This document shows positions 28,825-56,034 of a stretch of 64,000 nt of DNA, piece by piece. Position 1 is the first letter of the stretch; each line of letters starts with the position of its first letter. This DNA comes from Octopus sinensis (lineage: Eukaryota), in assembly GCF_006345805.1 (NCBI RefSeq), contig NC_043003.1, forward strand, positions 1,054,001 through 1,118,000, given 5' to 3'. A program made the translations under genes and the position numbers. The notes beneath the pieces were generated by a model. That model had not been told where the DNA came from. It worked only from the letters and a program-made list of their open reading frames with translations, and did not search any database.

Positions 28825-29045
28825 CTAGTCAAGTGTCCACATCCGATTTATTGTCATAATAACGAGGAACTGGAAGAGAAACAACAAAGGCATCCACTTG
28901 CCAGGAAGAATATTGGCGGAGTTACATAAGTAATCATAACAATAACACACTTTGGTGAGACTTCTGGACCCTGTGGATAGATAACAACCTTCGGGTTTCA
29001 CGTAGGTAGGTCTTACGGCGCAGGAAAAGGAGTTGTAGATGACCA
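28825..29045 (-). CDS. Terminal coding exon of the same Ly6/uPAR protein: (V)VIYNSFSCAVRPTYVKPEGCYLSTGSRSLTKVCYCYDYLCNSANILPGKWMPLLFLFQFLVIMTINRMWTLD*
   Basis: Acceptor ctgtttttcttctcttacaatttcAG|TG. Phase 1 matches the upstream donor (G+TG=Val). It carries Cys6-10 ending in the CxCxxxxCN motif, followed by small residues (N-S-A), a spacer and a hydrophobic C-terminus typical of a GPI signal. Stop TAG at 28827-28825. Confidence 0.9.
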
Positions 29046-29074
29046 CTGAAATTGTAAGAGAAGAAAAACAGATT

Positions 29075-29116
<42 letters not shown>

Positions 29117-29491
29117 TATAAAAATTATATATAAAGAAACAAGAACGTGAAATACACAAAGGGACGAACACAGAAAACAGACGGGTCATTCGAAGCCTTT
29201 AATCTTCAGTCAGAAACCGGATCATCATAGCAAATTTCGGCTGATTAATTCTGATATTTGCTCCAACGCGGCCAGCCCCAAGGAAAAACTAAGCTGTGAG
29301 CATTAGATTTCTTGGAAAAAGGAACAAATGTAAACGCAACAAGGACAGAAAAACGGACGAAGCCACACGAATATAAATACAAAAAACGAAAACAAAAATA
29401 AAAATAAAAACAAGAATGGTAATAACAGGATAACAGCAGGTGTCTTACGACTTTAGACAAATTGAGACAAATTTAACTTATCTAGCAGGCG

Positions 29492-29530
<39 letters not shown>

Positions 29531-29646
29531 CAATATAGGGTAAGAATTAATTAATTAATAAATCAATTAATTAACTGATTAATAATTAATCATTTTACCT
29601 AGTAGTCAGTACGTTAAAATAACCTTTATAGGTGAATTATACAAAA

Positions 29647-29790
29647 TCTCTTATTATAAAAGGCAGATTTTATCTGCCTCCCTTTGGGAGTTATACAAAT
29701 CTACAATATAGGATTTCTTCAATTACAATTTACCTAGCATTTTTAAGAGTACAATGCATCGCGTCATGCCAGGTCCATTTTTTAAATTTA
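29647..29790 (+). mobile_element. Helitron 5'-end fragment
   Basis: A^TCtcttattataaaaggcag start resembles the other Helitron 5' ends in the window. No 3' CTAG end found. Confidence 0.4.
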
Positions 29791-30465
29791 AACTCCAATT
29801 AAGCAAAATTTACAGAAAACTCACATTCTGGTGTGTGTGTCAAATGCTTTTCTTAGTCTGGTTTACACCACACGCAAACGCACACACACAGTGGGCAACG
29901 AATAAAGTGAAACTAGATGTAATATTTGTTTCTCTCTATCACGCTGATAGATACATGAGTAAAATGTATGGGAAGCTAACACATAAGTGTGAGTGAAAAT
30001 GTTCTTGGAAGAGAGTAAATAGCCAGAGATAGTGATTTGAGGAAGACTACATTAAATAACCGTAGTGGCTTGTGTTAGTAATAAAGTAAACATACACTCA
30101 TACATACATACATACATACATACATACATACATACACACACACACATACATACATACACACACACATACATACACACATACATACATATACATACATACA
30201 TATACATACATACATACACACACACACACATACACACACACACAGTATTGAAGCTTGAGAACAATCAGATACATTTGCAACACATCTGTTGAAAATATTA
30301 TTGTTCACACACATACATATACATATATACATACAGACAGACAGACAGATAACACACACACACACACCACACATGATCCAGCATGGCCACAACCTCAAGG
30401 CTGAAACATAAAAAGAATAACAGAATATAAATGTGTGCATGTGTGTGAGAGAGAGAGTGTGTGTG

Positions 30466-30497
<32 letters not shown>

Positions 30498-30679
30498 TGT
30501 ATGTATGTATGTATATATATATAATAATGCGGTTTTTTCAACAGCTTGAACTAAAAGTCAGAGGGGAATGGGATAAACTACTTATATTAGTAGTAATTTT
30601 ATCTTGTCCTTATTCATAGTGCAAGTTTTGAAGAGTGCATTTCGATTTTAACAGCTATTTTTTTCAAAGCTATATTGGA

Positions 30680-30950
30680 ACAGCCTAGAAGACGAGCCTC
30701 ATCCTGAAAGATCTGTAGAACTCGACAAGGACATCCTGAAAACCCTGGTGGAACAAAATCTCATCGTAACTGTTGAGGAACTAGCAGAGAAGCTTGGATT
30801 TGGTCATTCAACCATTCATTGAGACCTGTGTGCTATCGGAAAAGTCAGCAAATTGGGTCAATGGGTTCCTCACGAACTTTCCGAGTCTAATTGCATGCAG
30901 AGAGTGAATGTATGCTTTTCTTTGCTGTCACATCTCACCACTACTGCGCT
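30680..30950 (+). mobile_element. mariner transposase fragment truncated by Helitrons
   Basis: SLEDEPHPERSVELDKDILKTLVEQN...TVEELAEKLGFGHSTIH*DL...KLGQWVPHELS (WVPHEL motif). Confidence 0.85.
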
Positions 30951-30957
30951 ATGTATA

Positions 30958-52898: not shown

Positions 52899-52942
<44 letters not shown>

Positions 52943-53523
52943 GACGGGTTCTTTCAGTTTCCGTCTACCAAATCCGCACAAGGCTTTTGTCGGCCCGAGG
53001 CTAATAGTAAGACACTTGCCCAAGGTGCCACGCCATGGGACTGAACCCAGAACCATGTAGTTCGTAAGCAAGGTACTTCATCATCATTGTTCGACCGTGG
53101 TCGAGACAATGGAATTTACTATGTTACGCCAGACTTCACGGTCCATCATAGCATTACGGAGGTCCTGTTGCTGGATGCCTGTATCCATGGAGATTACATC
53201 AGGGTAGGAGAGTGTGCGCCCCCTCTGGTATTGCGAGTAGATGGCTTCCAGAGAGAGAAGAGTAGAAATTACTTCTTTTTAGCTCTACAACAATGTCCAG
53301 CAAACTGGACTCTTCCTACCTTTCACAAGAGATGACACAGGTGGTAATTTCCCATATATTTGCATTTTGGTTGGATGGTGCTTCCACGAGAGATTTTGAG
53401 CTCTCATAAGGAGGCGATTGTAGGTTCCATCCAACCGCCTCTCAAGCTTCTTTGATAACGTCCAGGTTTCTGAGCCATATAGTACTTACCATAAGGTACT
53501 TACCACACAGCCACTCCTACACC
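52680..53523 (-). mobile_element. Family A SINE interrupted by an RTE insertion
   Basis: The SINE body at 52680-53078 resumes at 53493-53523 (acttaccacacagccactcc). Confidence 0.85.
53079..53482 (-). mobile_element. 5'-truncated RTE-clade LINE with a (TGA)n tail
   Basis: LYGSETWTLSKKLERRLDGTYNRLL...FAGHC...AMMDREVWRNIV. 9-bp TSD aaggtactt (53070-53078 / 53493-53501). Confidence 0.9.
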
Positions 53524-54850
53524 TCCATGTATACATATGACGACGACGACGACGATGATGATGATGGTGATGGTTGACCACTTGTGACCGAGGAAGACCA
53601 TCACTGAATATTTCCCACTCAAAATTCTGACAATGCCCGTGCATGAGCTTAATGCACACTTGGCGTCACACACACCCGCACACACATACACTCAGATACA
53701 CACACGCACACACACAGACACATACACTCAGATACACACACGCACACACATAGACACGCACACATACACTCAGATACACACACGCACACACACAGACACG
53801 GACACATACACTCAGATACACACACGCCAATCGGTTTCACAAATCGGTTTCATAAATGTATGTATGTATGTGTATATATATCTATATTCACAAAAACAGG
53901 TGTCTGTATGTCGTGCATATTTACATACACACAAACATGCATACATACACACATACATACATATATACATACACACATACATACATACATATATACATAC
54001 ATACATACATACATACACACATACATACATATATACATACATACACACGCCCACTCATAATACATATATACATACACACACACGTACATACATACACACA
54101 TACATACATACATATATACATACATACACACACCAACTCATAATACATATATACATACACACACACGTACATCCCCTGCTTCCATTTCCTGAGCGCCTAT
54201 TAATAATAATACTGTAATTGTTCCATTGTTGTTGTTTTTTTGTTTCCCGTTTGGATTAAAATTACACTACATACATACATACATACATACATGCATACAT
54301 ACACACATACATACATACACCCACCCACTCATAATACATATATACATACATACACACATACATACATATATGCATACATACACACATACATACATCCATC
54401 AATCCATCCATCCATCCATCCATCCATACATACATACATACATACACACACACACATACATACATACATGCATACATTTTACAACAGAATACTATTATGA
54501 AGAGTGGAATCAGAATTCTGCTTGGTTGAGTCGGTGTGAATCTCTGCGCGGAGTTTCGCCTCCCTGATCCTCAGGCAAATCTACACAGCGACATCCAAGC
54601 GTCAATACGAAAAAGCTATCTTGTAATTACATATTGTAGCACTGAAATTTCTATCTGTTGCTACTCTCAAGGACACGTTTCTAAAGTGCTAAGTGAAATA
54701 TTTGTAACAGAATTTGCGTTGGCTGTCAAGAAATAGAGGCGGCGAAAATGTGTGTGAAGCAAAAATAAAAAAAAAATAATAAATGAAAAATAAAAAAAAG
54801 GACAAAAGAATCATACACACACACACACACACACATATATAATATAACAC

Positions 54851-54924
<74 letters not shown>

Positions 54925-54951
54925 TATATATGTATATATATATACACACAC

Positions 54952-54986
<35 letters not shown>

Positions 54987-55112
54987 TGTATGTATGTATG
55001 TATGTATGTATGTATATATAATGCAAGTTACTTCATTTGTGTATCAACAAGGCTGCCAATGGCTTTATGTTAAATAGAGATCTCTATAAGTTTCAAGAGT
55101 ACAACATGGGAA

Positions 55113-55276
55113 AGAGGCGTGGGTGGGTGGTAAGAAGTTTGCTTTCCGACCACATGGTTCTGGGTTCAGTCCCACTGCGCGTTCCGCACCTTGGGCAAGT
55201 CTCTTCTACTATAGCCTCGGGCCGACTAAAACCTTGAGAGTGGATTTGGTTGATGGAAACTGAAAGAAGCCTGTCG

Positions 55277-55361
<85 letters not shown>

Positions 55362-55465
55362 ATCTTTGTGACGACCCCATCACCACTTGACAAGTGATGT
55401 TGGTTTGTTTACGACCCCGCAATTAGCGGTTCGGCCTAAGAAACCGATTAAATAAGTACCAGGTT
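55113..55465 (+). mobile_element. Family A SINE, about 400 nt downstream (transcript sense) of the Ly6 exon
   Basis: Head, body and internal microsatellite as in 894-1273. Confidence 0.85.
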
Positions 55466-55866
55466 TTGCTTATTTAGGTTATGTTATTTATTTATTGGTG
55501 AAGGTACGTGGTCTGGTGATTAGAGTATTATATGCATGACTAGAAGATCGTGGTTTCCGTTTCTGGATCTGGCGGTGCATTGTGTTCCTGAGCAGCACAC
55601 TTCACTTCACGTTGCCTCACTCCACTCAGCTCTAAACGAATTTCTAGCAATAACTGGGAAGTTCACCCTGCAATGGACTAGCGTCCCATCCTGCGGCGTG
55701 GAAAGTGTTTGAGATATCATCACTTATAAGCCATGGAAATCGGGTCAAGTTCCGGCCTTATGAGTCATATGACACATGGAAACCAAATTCCGCTTCGGTC
55801 TTAGGAATCTAAAAATTATGAACAAGAAAATGAAAAGACTGAGAGTGAACAATGATTTCTGCTTAC

Positions 55867-56034
55867 CTTTCGGTCGATTCCAGTAATCGTGCATCTCCAT
55901 TCGAGTGTGAACTTTTAAACATGCGTAGCAGCCCTTCATTTTTCTTTGGAGGTGACCGTCTTCGGCGCACGTATCTAAAACACTACCGCGAAATCTGTTG
56001 CATTCGTAACATGTTAAGTTGGCTGGTTTCAGAT
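55867..56034 (-). CDS. Internal coding exon (168 nt, phase 1-1) of a Ly6/uPAR three-finger protein: xLKPANLTCYECNRFRGSVLDTCAEDGHLQRKMKGCYACLKVHTRMEMHDYWNRPK
   Basis: Acceptor tattttctctctcttcgaatattcAG| and donor AAAG|GTAAGC. The frame is open and carries Cys1-5 (CxxC...C...CxxC.K) and an NLT sequon. It is non-repetitive sequence in a repeat-rich background. Confidence 0.9.

Follow-up and report, generated by a model that had tools for sequence, protein, structure and literature searches.

The question raised by this locus is whether two short exons lying almost 27 kb apart on the reverse strand belong to a single gene and, if so, what kind of protein that gene encodes. The exons occupy positions 56034-55867 and 29045-28825 of a 64,000-nucleotide stretch of the Octopus sinensis genome (contig NC_043003.1, positions 1,054,001 to 1,118,000; hereafter the window, whose numbering is used throughout). 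An initial annotation had spliced them into an "orphan" member of the Ly6/uPAR (LU) superfamily with a glycosylphosphatidylinositol (GPI)-type tail. Our analysis indicates, with a probability of roughly 85%, that the interval 28825-56034 holds coding exons 2 and 3 of an annotated and conserved O. sinensis gene, LOC115214096, that its product is a single-LU-domain, GPI-type protein of the Quiver family which would bind a conserved partner through its second finger, and that the assembly gap between the two exons is an artefact.

The gene is already known: the public O. sinensis annotation contains it, and the reconstruction by hand reproduces the existing model. The peptide encoded in the window corresponds to residues 23-150 of RefSeq XP_029639009.1 (uncharacterized protein LOC115214096, Octopus sinensis), with 128 of 128 residues identical. 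This record was found in the same 90% cluster as the O. bimaculoides orthologue that the window peptide matched in a search of protein collections (E = 8e-75, 88% identity), a search in which two 150-residue proteins from transcript contigs were also matched. In the genomic locus of the XP_029639009.1 gene (designated L004; GCA_006345805.1, CM016865.1), the window exons, their flanks and a run of 100 N are present as exact strings, and the window therefore belongs to assembly GCA_006345805.1. LOC115214096 consists of three coding exons, extends over 97.4 kb, encodes a precursor of 150 residues and is the sole gene called in the 117-kb locus. The term "orphan" must consequently be abandoned, as the exact protein is in RefSeq, an orthologue of the same structure occurs in O. 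bimaculoides, and homologues are spread across molluscs and other spiralians. The main value of the reconstruction is as a check that split exons ~27 kb apart can be recovered from sequence.

The exon boundaries are well defined. Coding exon 2 (168 nt; 55867-56034, reverse strand) is preceded by a pyrimidine-rich acceptor ending in tattcag, with its AG at 56036-56035, and is followed by a GTAAGC donor, with its GT at 55866-55865; its sequence, frame and 100% match to precursor residues 23-77 agree with these limits. Its first two bases complete the Asn22 codon, and L23-K77 of the precursor follow. The segment comprises finger I and the first half of finger II, together with Cys1-5 and an N-L-T glycosylation sequon. 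Coding exon 3 (221 nt including the TAG stop at 28827-28825; 28825-29045, reverse strand) was delimited by its sequence, frame and match to XP_029639009.1. Its acceptor is a long pyrimidine tract ending in tttcag, and it supplies the remaining half of finger II and all of finger III, with Cys6-10 and the CN motif, followed by the GPI-type signal at the C-terminus. Exon 2 opens with the two bases "at" of a split codon and closes with a single "g", which joins the "tg" of exon 3 to give GTG (Val), such that the junction is in phase 1. The joined frame (56034-55867 plus 29045-28825) reads LKPANLTCYECNRFRGSVLDTCAEDGHLQRKMKGCYACLKVHTRMEMHDYWNRPK and then, across the junction, VVIYNSFSCAVRPTYVKPEGCYLSTGSRSLTKVCYCYDYLCNSANILPGKWMPLLFLFQFLVIMTINRMWTLD up to the stop. 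The 128 residues and one split codon account for the 129-residue partial protein proposed initially, including its exactly ten Cys residues in the pattern given there, and the two-exon splice is borne out by canonical AG/GT sites, an open frame and complete identity to the RefSeq protein.

The intervening intron 2 (phase 1; 29046-55866, reverse strand) measures 26,821 bp as assembled and was recognized by blocks collinear with intron 2 of O. bimaculoides. It interrupts the LU domain between K55 and V56 of the partial peptide, beside the tip of finger II (residues 49-53 form the hairpin tip in the structural model described below). Positions 56035-64000 represent the 3' end of intron 1 (phase 1, reverse strand, ~70 kb in total), as seen by mapping the exons of XP_029639009.1 on L004. 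Exon 1 itself (L004 10001-10064) is situated ~62 kb beyond the last position of the window, 64000; tblastn with the N-termini of the O. sinensis and O. bimaculoides proteins did not find it within the window. It reads from the ATG through MAERNITYFLLFLAMVWSVQG plus one base, followed by a GTAAGT donor, and its last base "a" together with the "at" of exon 2 forms the codon for Asn22. The exon 1 product, MAERNITYFLLFLAMVWSVQG, displays a hydrophobic core followed by V-Q-G and was judged by eye to be a signal peptide.

Support for the junction comes from other cephalopods. Exons 2 and 3 of O. bimaculoides are also 168 and 221 nt long, with the same acceptor and donor contexts. In two cephalopod transcript contigs, L002 from Sepia esculenta (run SRR19578102, larval RNA-seq according to five papers) and L003, the homologous coding sequence continues uninterrupted over the junction, and when their proteins are aligned to the window by tblastn, the matches break off precisely there, between residues 78 and 79 and between residues 82 and 83. 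The ratio of non-synonymous to synonymous substitution rates (dN/dS) between O. sinensis and O. bimaculoides is 0.20 overall, 0.07 for the LU domain and 0.67 for the C-terminal tail; from C35 to N97, the two octopus species differ by 15 synonymous and no non-synonymous changes. This substitution pattern indicates that LOC115214096 is a functional, constrained coding gene.

The ten Cys residues occupy positions 8, 11, 22, 35, 38, 64, 76, 89, 91 and 96 of the partial peptide and are followed by N97, in the pattern C-YE-C...C...C-YA-C...C...C...C-Y-C-YDYL-CN, with a spacing of 25 residues between Cys5 and Cys6. The only Pfam match is QVR (PF17064), which aligns over its full length (model positions 1-86 of 86) with 18.8 bits (E = 0.0034) for the window peptide and 18.1 bits for the full precursor, both scores being below the 27.3-bit gathering threshold. 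A profile built from four cephalopod sequences was searched against 1.84 billion representatives and gave 42 matches at E <= 0.001, of which 35 were aligned. All ten Cys residues and the Asn of the CN motif are invariant in these 35 relatives, every one of which matches Pfam QVR at E <= 0.01 (best 8e-7), and several carry PF17064 in their precomputed annotation. The likeness to invertebrate Quiver-type proteins is thereby upheld.

The relatives identified by name in the profile search are all spiralian. They include bivalves (oysters, Mytilus, Pecten and unionid mussels), the gastropods Lottia and Babylonia, the annelids Owenia and Paralvinella, the nemertean Tubulanus, the brachiopod Lingula and the flatworm Protopolystoma, and are mostly labelled "uncharacterized" or, by the automatic naming of UniProt, "Protein quiver/sleepless". 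Homologues in the cuttlefish and in another cephalopod transcriptome are 50-58% identical, and in the full-library search E <= 1e-30 was reached by two 50%-identity representatives only. The identifiable matches (of the 42) to the cephalopod profile included no arthropod or vertebrate protein; a profile search of a word-indexed database returned 14 proteins only, its reach not extending to arthropod Ly6 proteins. As judged from these comparisons, the octopus protein belongs to an uncharacterized Quiver-like subfamily that appears so far only in spiralian animals. Two of the relatives are themselves of unusual composition: a 262-residue protein bears two Sushi repeats ahead of its LU domain, a 197-residue protein bears a thrombospondin type 1 repeat in the same place, and in both the LU domain is followed by a GPI-type tail. 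Such fusions are uncommon, since LU domains are rare in mosaic proteins (PMC6600238).

Structure prediction with AlphaFold2 was carried out with the 35-sequence alignment, because the run with four sequences only was unusable (predicted local distance difference test, pLDDT, of 41). The resulting model (pLDDT 89, predicted template modelling score 0.72) is a three-finger, all-beta fold with long hairpins at residues 37-48/54-65 (finger II) and 75-80/84-91, and a C-terminal helix at residues 106-127. In a Foldseek comparison with the PDB, the 29 best matches are all three-finger or LU domains (probability 0.63-1.0, ~0.9-1.0 for the top ones; E-values of 0.014-0.5), headed by the ectodomains of AMHR2 and the TGF-beta type II receptor, GPIHBP1 (target-normalized template modelling score 0.69-0.71, root-mean-square deviation 3.7 Å), uPAR, C4.4A, CD177 and TEX101. 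When the family profile was searched against PDB sequences, no meaningful match emerged. The archetypal LU gene (PMC6600238) has three exons separated by phase-1 introns; its internal intron falls at the loop 2 tip, and exon 3 carries the GPI signal. LOC115214096 shows the same layout: its signal peptide is in exon 1, both introns are in phase 1, the K55/V56 junction falls beside the hairpin tip, and the tail is in exon 3. By its ten-Cys pattern, three-finger fold, gene layout and signal peptide, the protein is a member of the LU superfamily, as the initial annotation had assigned it.

Examination of finger II revealed the most constrained part of the protein. Its first half, L39-K55 (55867-55918, reverse strand), includes a core, KVHTRMEMHDYW, that is invariant in cephalopods, being identical in four sequences that are otherwise ~50% identical to the window peptide. 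Bivalves (oyster, mussel, scallop and unionid) have a loop II of the same length with the motif K-x-[HY]-T-[RK]-x-x-[ML]-H-[DN]-x-W. The 25-residue loop is thus of normal length in this subfamily, and the description of the protein as a divergent Ly6 with a long loop II does not hold. Loop II is thus an old and strongly constrained surface, and it points to a partner that is old as well. In Drosophila, loop 2 is the only loop that Quiver/Sleepless (QVR/SSS) needs in order to bind Shaker and the nicotinic acetylcholine receptor (nAChR) (PMC4735452). By analogy, an interaction in cis with a membrane protein, mediated by finger II, is a reasonable proposal; a neuronal channel or receptor would be our leading guess for the partner, with a role in septate-junction assembly as the main alternative, and a general modulation of a channel or receptor, as by Quiver or Lynx, may be envisaged.

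A narrower version of this proposal, favoured initially, is that the protein, by its H/R/W/D-rich loop II, modulates nicotinic receptors in the manner of an endogenous toxin or, more specifically, does so for the nAChR-derived chemotactile receptors of the octopus. The family likeness to Quiver/Sleepless is real, the loop concerned is the one on which QVR/SSS depends for its Shaker and nAChR binding (PMC4735452), and it is also the part of the octopus protein that has changed least. The invariance of the core in cuttlefish and the motif in common with bivalves, however, predate the expansion of the octopus chemotactile receptors. The scarcity of close representatives and the lack of a paralogous exon in the window indicate that the gene was not expanded alongside the receptors. 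Moreover, no orthologue of arthropod qvr is among the identifiable profile matches, and literature searches (for the gene identifiers, for Ly6 proteins in cephalopods or molluscs, and for Ly6 proteins together with chemotactile receptors) returned nothing relevant, including no paper linking Ly6 proteins to octopus chemotactile receptors. We therefore regard this version as rather unlikely, and, because the deep conservation predates the receptor expansion, a partner specific to the octopus chemotactile receptors is less likely than a conserved one.

The protein could tentatively be seen instead as an epithelial or glial barrier Ly6 that serves septate-junction assembly, like boudin, crooked, coiled and crimpled of Drosophila, which are likewise single-LU, ten-Cys, GPI-anchored proteins of one insect Ly6 group (PMC6600238). 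Its deep conservation and single copy would suit a housekeeping structural role, and transcripts are known from whole larvae of the cuttlefish and from numerous oyster runs. The named matches in the profile search, all of them spiralian, speak against a direct equation with these insect proteins, and we consider the barrier role doubtful.

The putative C-terminal propeptide, S98-D128 (SANILPGKWMPLLFLFQFLVIMTINRMWTLD; 28828-28920, reverse strand), was defined by the layout common to the 35 relatives, its dN/dS of 0.67 and the predicted helix at 106-127. By inspection, the octopus tail after the last Cys consists of the small triplet N-S-A, a spacer of 6-7 residues, a hydrophobic run of 15 residues and seven rather polar end residues. 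All 35 relatives exhibit a single layout of 22-34 residues (with one outlier), in which small residues and a spacer precede a hydrophobic end. The layout fits a predicted GPI-attachment signal, in agreement with the tail type first suggested. Quite improbable, in our estimation, is an uncleaved tail whose hydrophobic stretch spans the membrane as a helix and leaves seven residues in the cytoplasm, in place of a cleaved GPI signal. Both octopus species do continue beyond the hydrophobic run with N(R/Q)MWTLD, and AlphaFold models residues 106-127 as a helix. Against this, the cuttlefish-type homologues and most of the 35 relatives terminate inside the hydrophobic run or directly behind it, small residues come immediately after their CN motif, and the near-neutral evolution of the tail is as expected of a discarded propeptide.

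Some features of the cuttlefish sequences should be mentioned here. Two cuttlefish-type proteins (from Logan transcript contigs, in one 90% cluster) are near-identical through ...CNSARRD and then possess wholly different hydrophobic tails, a difference that might stem from an alternative last exon, from a recently arisen paralogue or from an artefact of assembly; in the octopus gene, the tail and finger III are encoded in one exon. The Sepia esculenta contig L002 (1-1541) contains, in addition to the Ly6 coding sequence at 110-562, a complete VPS29-like (Metallophos_2) coding sequence ~50 nt further on the same strand and an Illumina adapter at its end. VPS29 was not found in the octopus window, beside the Ly6 gene or elsewhere, and the contig is therefore probably an assembly chimera rather than a bicistronic transcript.

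Returning to the proposed GPI-anchored protein, its path can be envisaged as follows. The exon 1 signal peptide would direct the precursor to the endoplasmic reticulum, where the LU domain would fold with five disulfides (expected pairs 8-38, 11-22, 35-64, 76-89 and 91-96). A GPI anchor would replace the hydrophobic C-terminal propeptide at the N-S-A site that follows the last Cys, and the mature protein would then reside on the outer membrane leaflet. There, the long invariant finger II would bind its evolutionarily old membrane partner in cis, in the manner in which Quiver/Sleepless employs loop 2. As a long shot, starting from a single-copy Ly6 whose finger II has remained unchanged for hundreds of millions of years, one may picture an obligate accessory subunit of a pentameric ligand-gated channel that was co-opted in octopus to tune the nAChR-derived chemotactile receptors in the sensory cells of the sucker.

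Several points weigh against the overall interpretation of the gene as that of a GPI-type Quiver-family protein with a conserved partner. The QVR scores fall short of the Pfam threshold, and the Foldseek E-values are all > 0.001 (best 0.014). The last seven residues of the octopus tail, NRMWTLD, are rather polar, which would be compatible with a short transmembrane anchor. In octopus, the exon junction rests on the RefSeq and UniProt models together with conservation, and the identity of the partner is pure inference. The interest of the gene lies in its membership of an uncharacterized spiralian Quiver-like subfamily with an exceptionally conserved finger II. Should a member of this subfamily prove to regulate nicotinic-type receptors, the Lynx/Sleepless principle would extend to molluscs, and a ready candidate would be available for cephalopod sensory and neural physiology.

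The assembly between the two exons required separate consideration. Intron 2 includes a gap of 100 N (48947-49046), with 6.8 kb separating it from the exon-2 donor and 19.9 kb separating it from the exon-3 acceptor; since the gap is wholly intronic, the reading frame is unaffected. It is flanked by two copies of a 1.76-kb block, the first of which (47183-48946) starts at the edge of an (AAAG)n microsatellite and ends exactly at the gap, while the second (49047-50811) starts exactly at the gap. The copies are 99.5% identical over 1768 columns, and both map to one single-copy interval of the O. bimaculoides locus (L001 58474-59337). Judged from these alignments, the run of N is most likely a false gap between two overlapping, unmerged contig ends of GCA_006345805.1, the artefactual duplication probably adding 1,865 bp of false sequence. 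Because the flanks would then represent one overlap present twice, the true length of intron 2 is probably ~24,956 bp instead of 26,821 bp, and the (AAAG)n array bordering the duplicated block may mark the point at which the contig broke. The duplication may alternatively be real, in tandem and very recent; the gene model is unchanged either way.

On the exon-2 side of the gap, the unique blocks 56332-55291, 54903-54425, 51808-51578 and 50566-49646 follow the order of O. bimaculoides intron 2, and the same order is kept on the exon-3 side by the blocks 48702-47781, 46267-45952, 42740-42492, 40140-39465, 38800-38511, 34940-33784 and 29127-28523. That the two exons were brought together from different genes by misassembly across the gap, or that the gene is a pseudogene, is extremely improbable: a gap with a probably artefactual duplication does sit between them, but in the independent assembly of O. 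bimaculoides both exons recur on the same strand and in unchanged order, and the intron blocks to either side of where the gap falls are collinear; cuttlefish transcripts connect the homologous halves of the split gene, no further homologous exon occurs in the window, and the frame is open with the LU-domain dN/dS as low as 0.07.

Other contents of intron 2 and of the window were surveyed as well. Tandem paralogues and alternative exons in intron 2 were considered and rejected, as tblastn of three cephalopod proteins matched the two exons only; the same search found no paralogous exon elsewhere in the window. Nested genes and transposon open reading frames were also rejected: 10 of the 13 open reading frames of >=150 residues were scanned against Pfam and gave no match at the gathering threshold, the other three lying in or beside the (AAAG)n array (46341-48137). 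Scans of the window for tRNA genes and Rfam families gave no matches. From position 18825 upward, LOC115214096 is the sole called gene. The intron includes two prominent microsatellites, the (AAAG)n array of ~800 bp at 46387-47184 and an (AT)n array of ~500 bp at 41422-41928. In O. bimaculoides, intron 2 (L001 55361-64027) measures 8.7 kb, compared to 26.8 kb in O. sinensis, four N runs totalling ~2.9 kb making its true length uncertain.

Comparison with the O. bimaculoides locus also disclosed an interspersed repeat of ~200-450 bp, SINE-like (resembling short interspersed nuclear elements) in appearance, which is present in both orientations and of which the O. bimaculoides locus has many copies at 65-90% identity. 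Its copies in the window are at 57144-56705, 55466-55115, 53078-52684, 51228-50832, 34126-33893, 17872-17474, 17255-16848, 12262-12032 and 1269-846. A second interspersed family, of ~150-270 bp and up to 93% identical to O. bimaculoides copies, is represented at 63608-63438, 26673-26160, 22590-22345, 21133-20917, 12873-12671 and 7555-7282. Beyond the stop codon, from 28381-26986 onward to ~17839, long blocks are collinear with O. bimaculoides at 76-89% identity. This conservation is about at the level of the aligned intron blocks and, taken alone, would mark out neither a 3' untranslated region nor a further gene.

Placed beside known systems, the window is indistinguishable from XP_029639009.1: the 128 encoded residues, the splice junction, the assembly and the N gap are all identical, and the RefSeq record additionally holds exon 1. 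The O. bimaculoides orthologue (XP_014777228.1, UniProt A0A0L8GXT7, LOC106874127, named "Protein quiver" in UniProt) is like that of O. sinensis in its three coding exons, 168- and 221-nt exon lengths and splice-site flanks; at 88% identity, the two proteins differ in finger I and the tail only, and intron 2 is shorter as assembled. Like Drosophila QVR/SSS, the founder of PF17064, the octopus protein combines a single ten-Cys LU domain, a C-x-C-xxxx-CN ending, a signal peptide and a GPI-type tail, whereas its score lies under the Pfam threshold and arthropod proteins are absent from the identified profile matches. With boudin, crooked, coiled and crimpled of Drosophila, which were likened by description only (PMC6600238), it has the domain type and predicted anchoring in common. 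The vertebrate GPIHBP1, CD59, Lynx1 and uPAR domains exhibit the same three-finger fold, and their genes likewise have three exons and phase-1 introns, one of them at the loop 2 tip. In contrast to the adjacent Cys8-Cys9 pair (CC) of the vertebrate LU proteins, the octopus protein has a C-x-C arrangement, together with a longer finger II.

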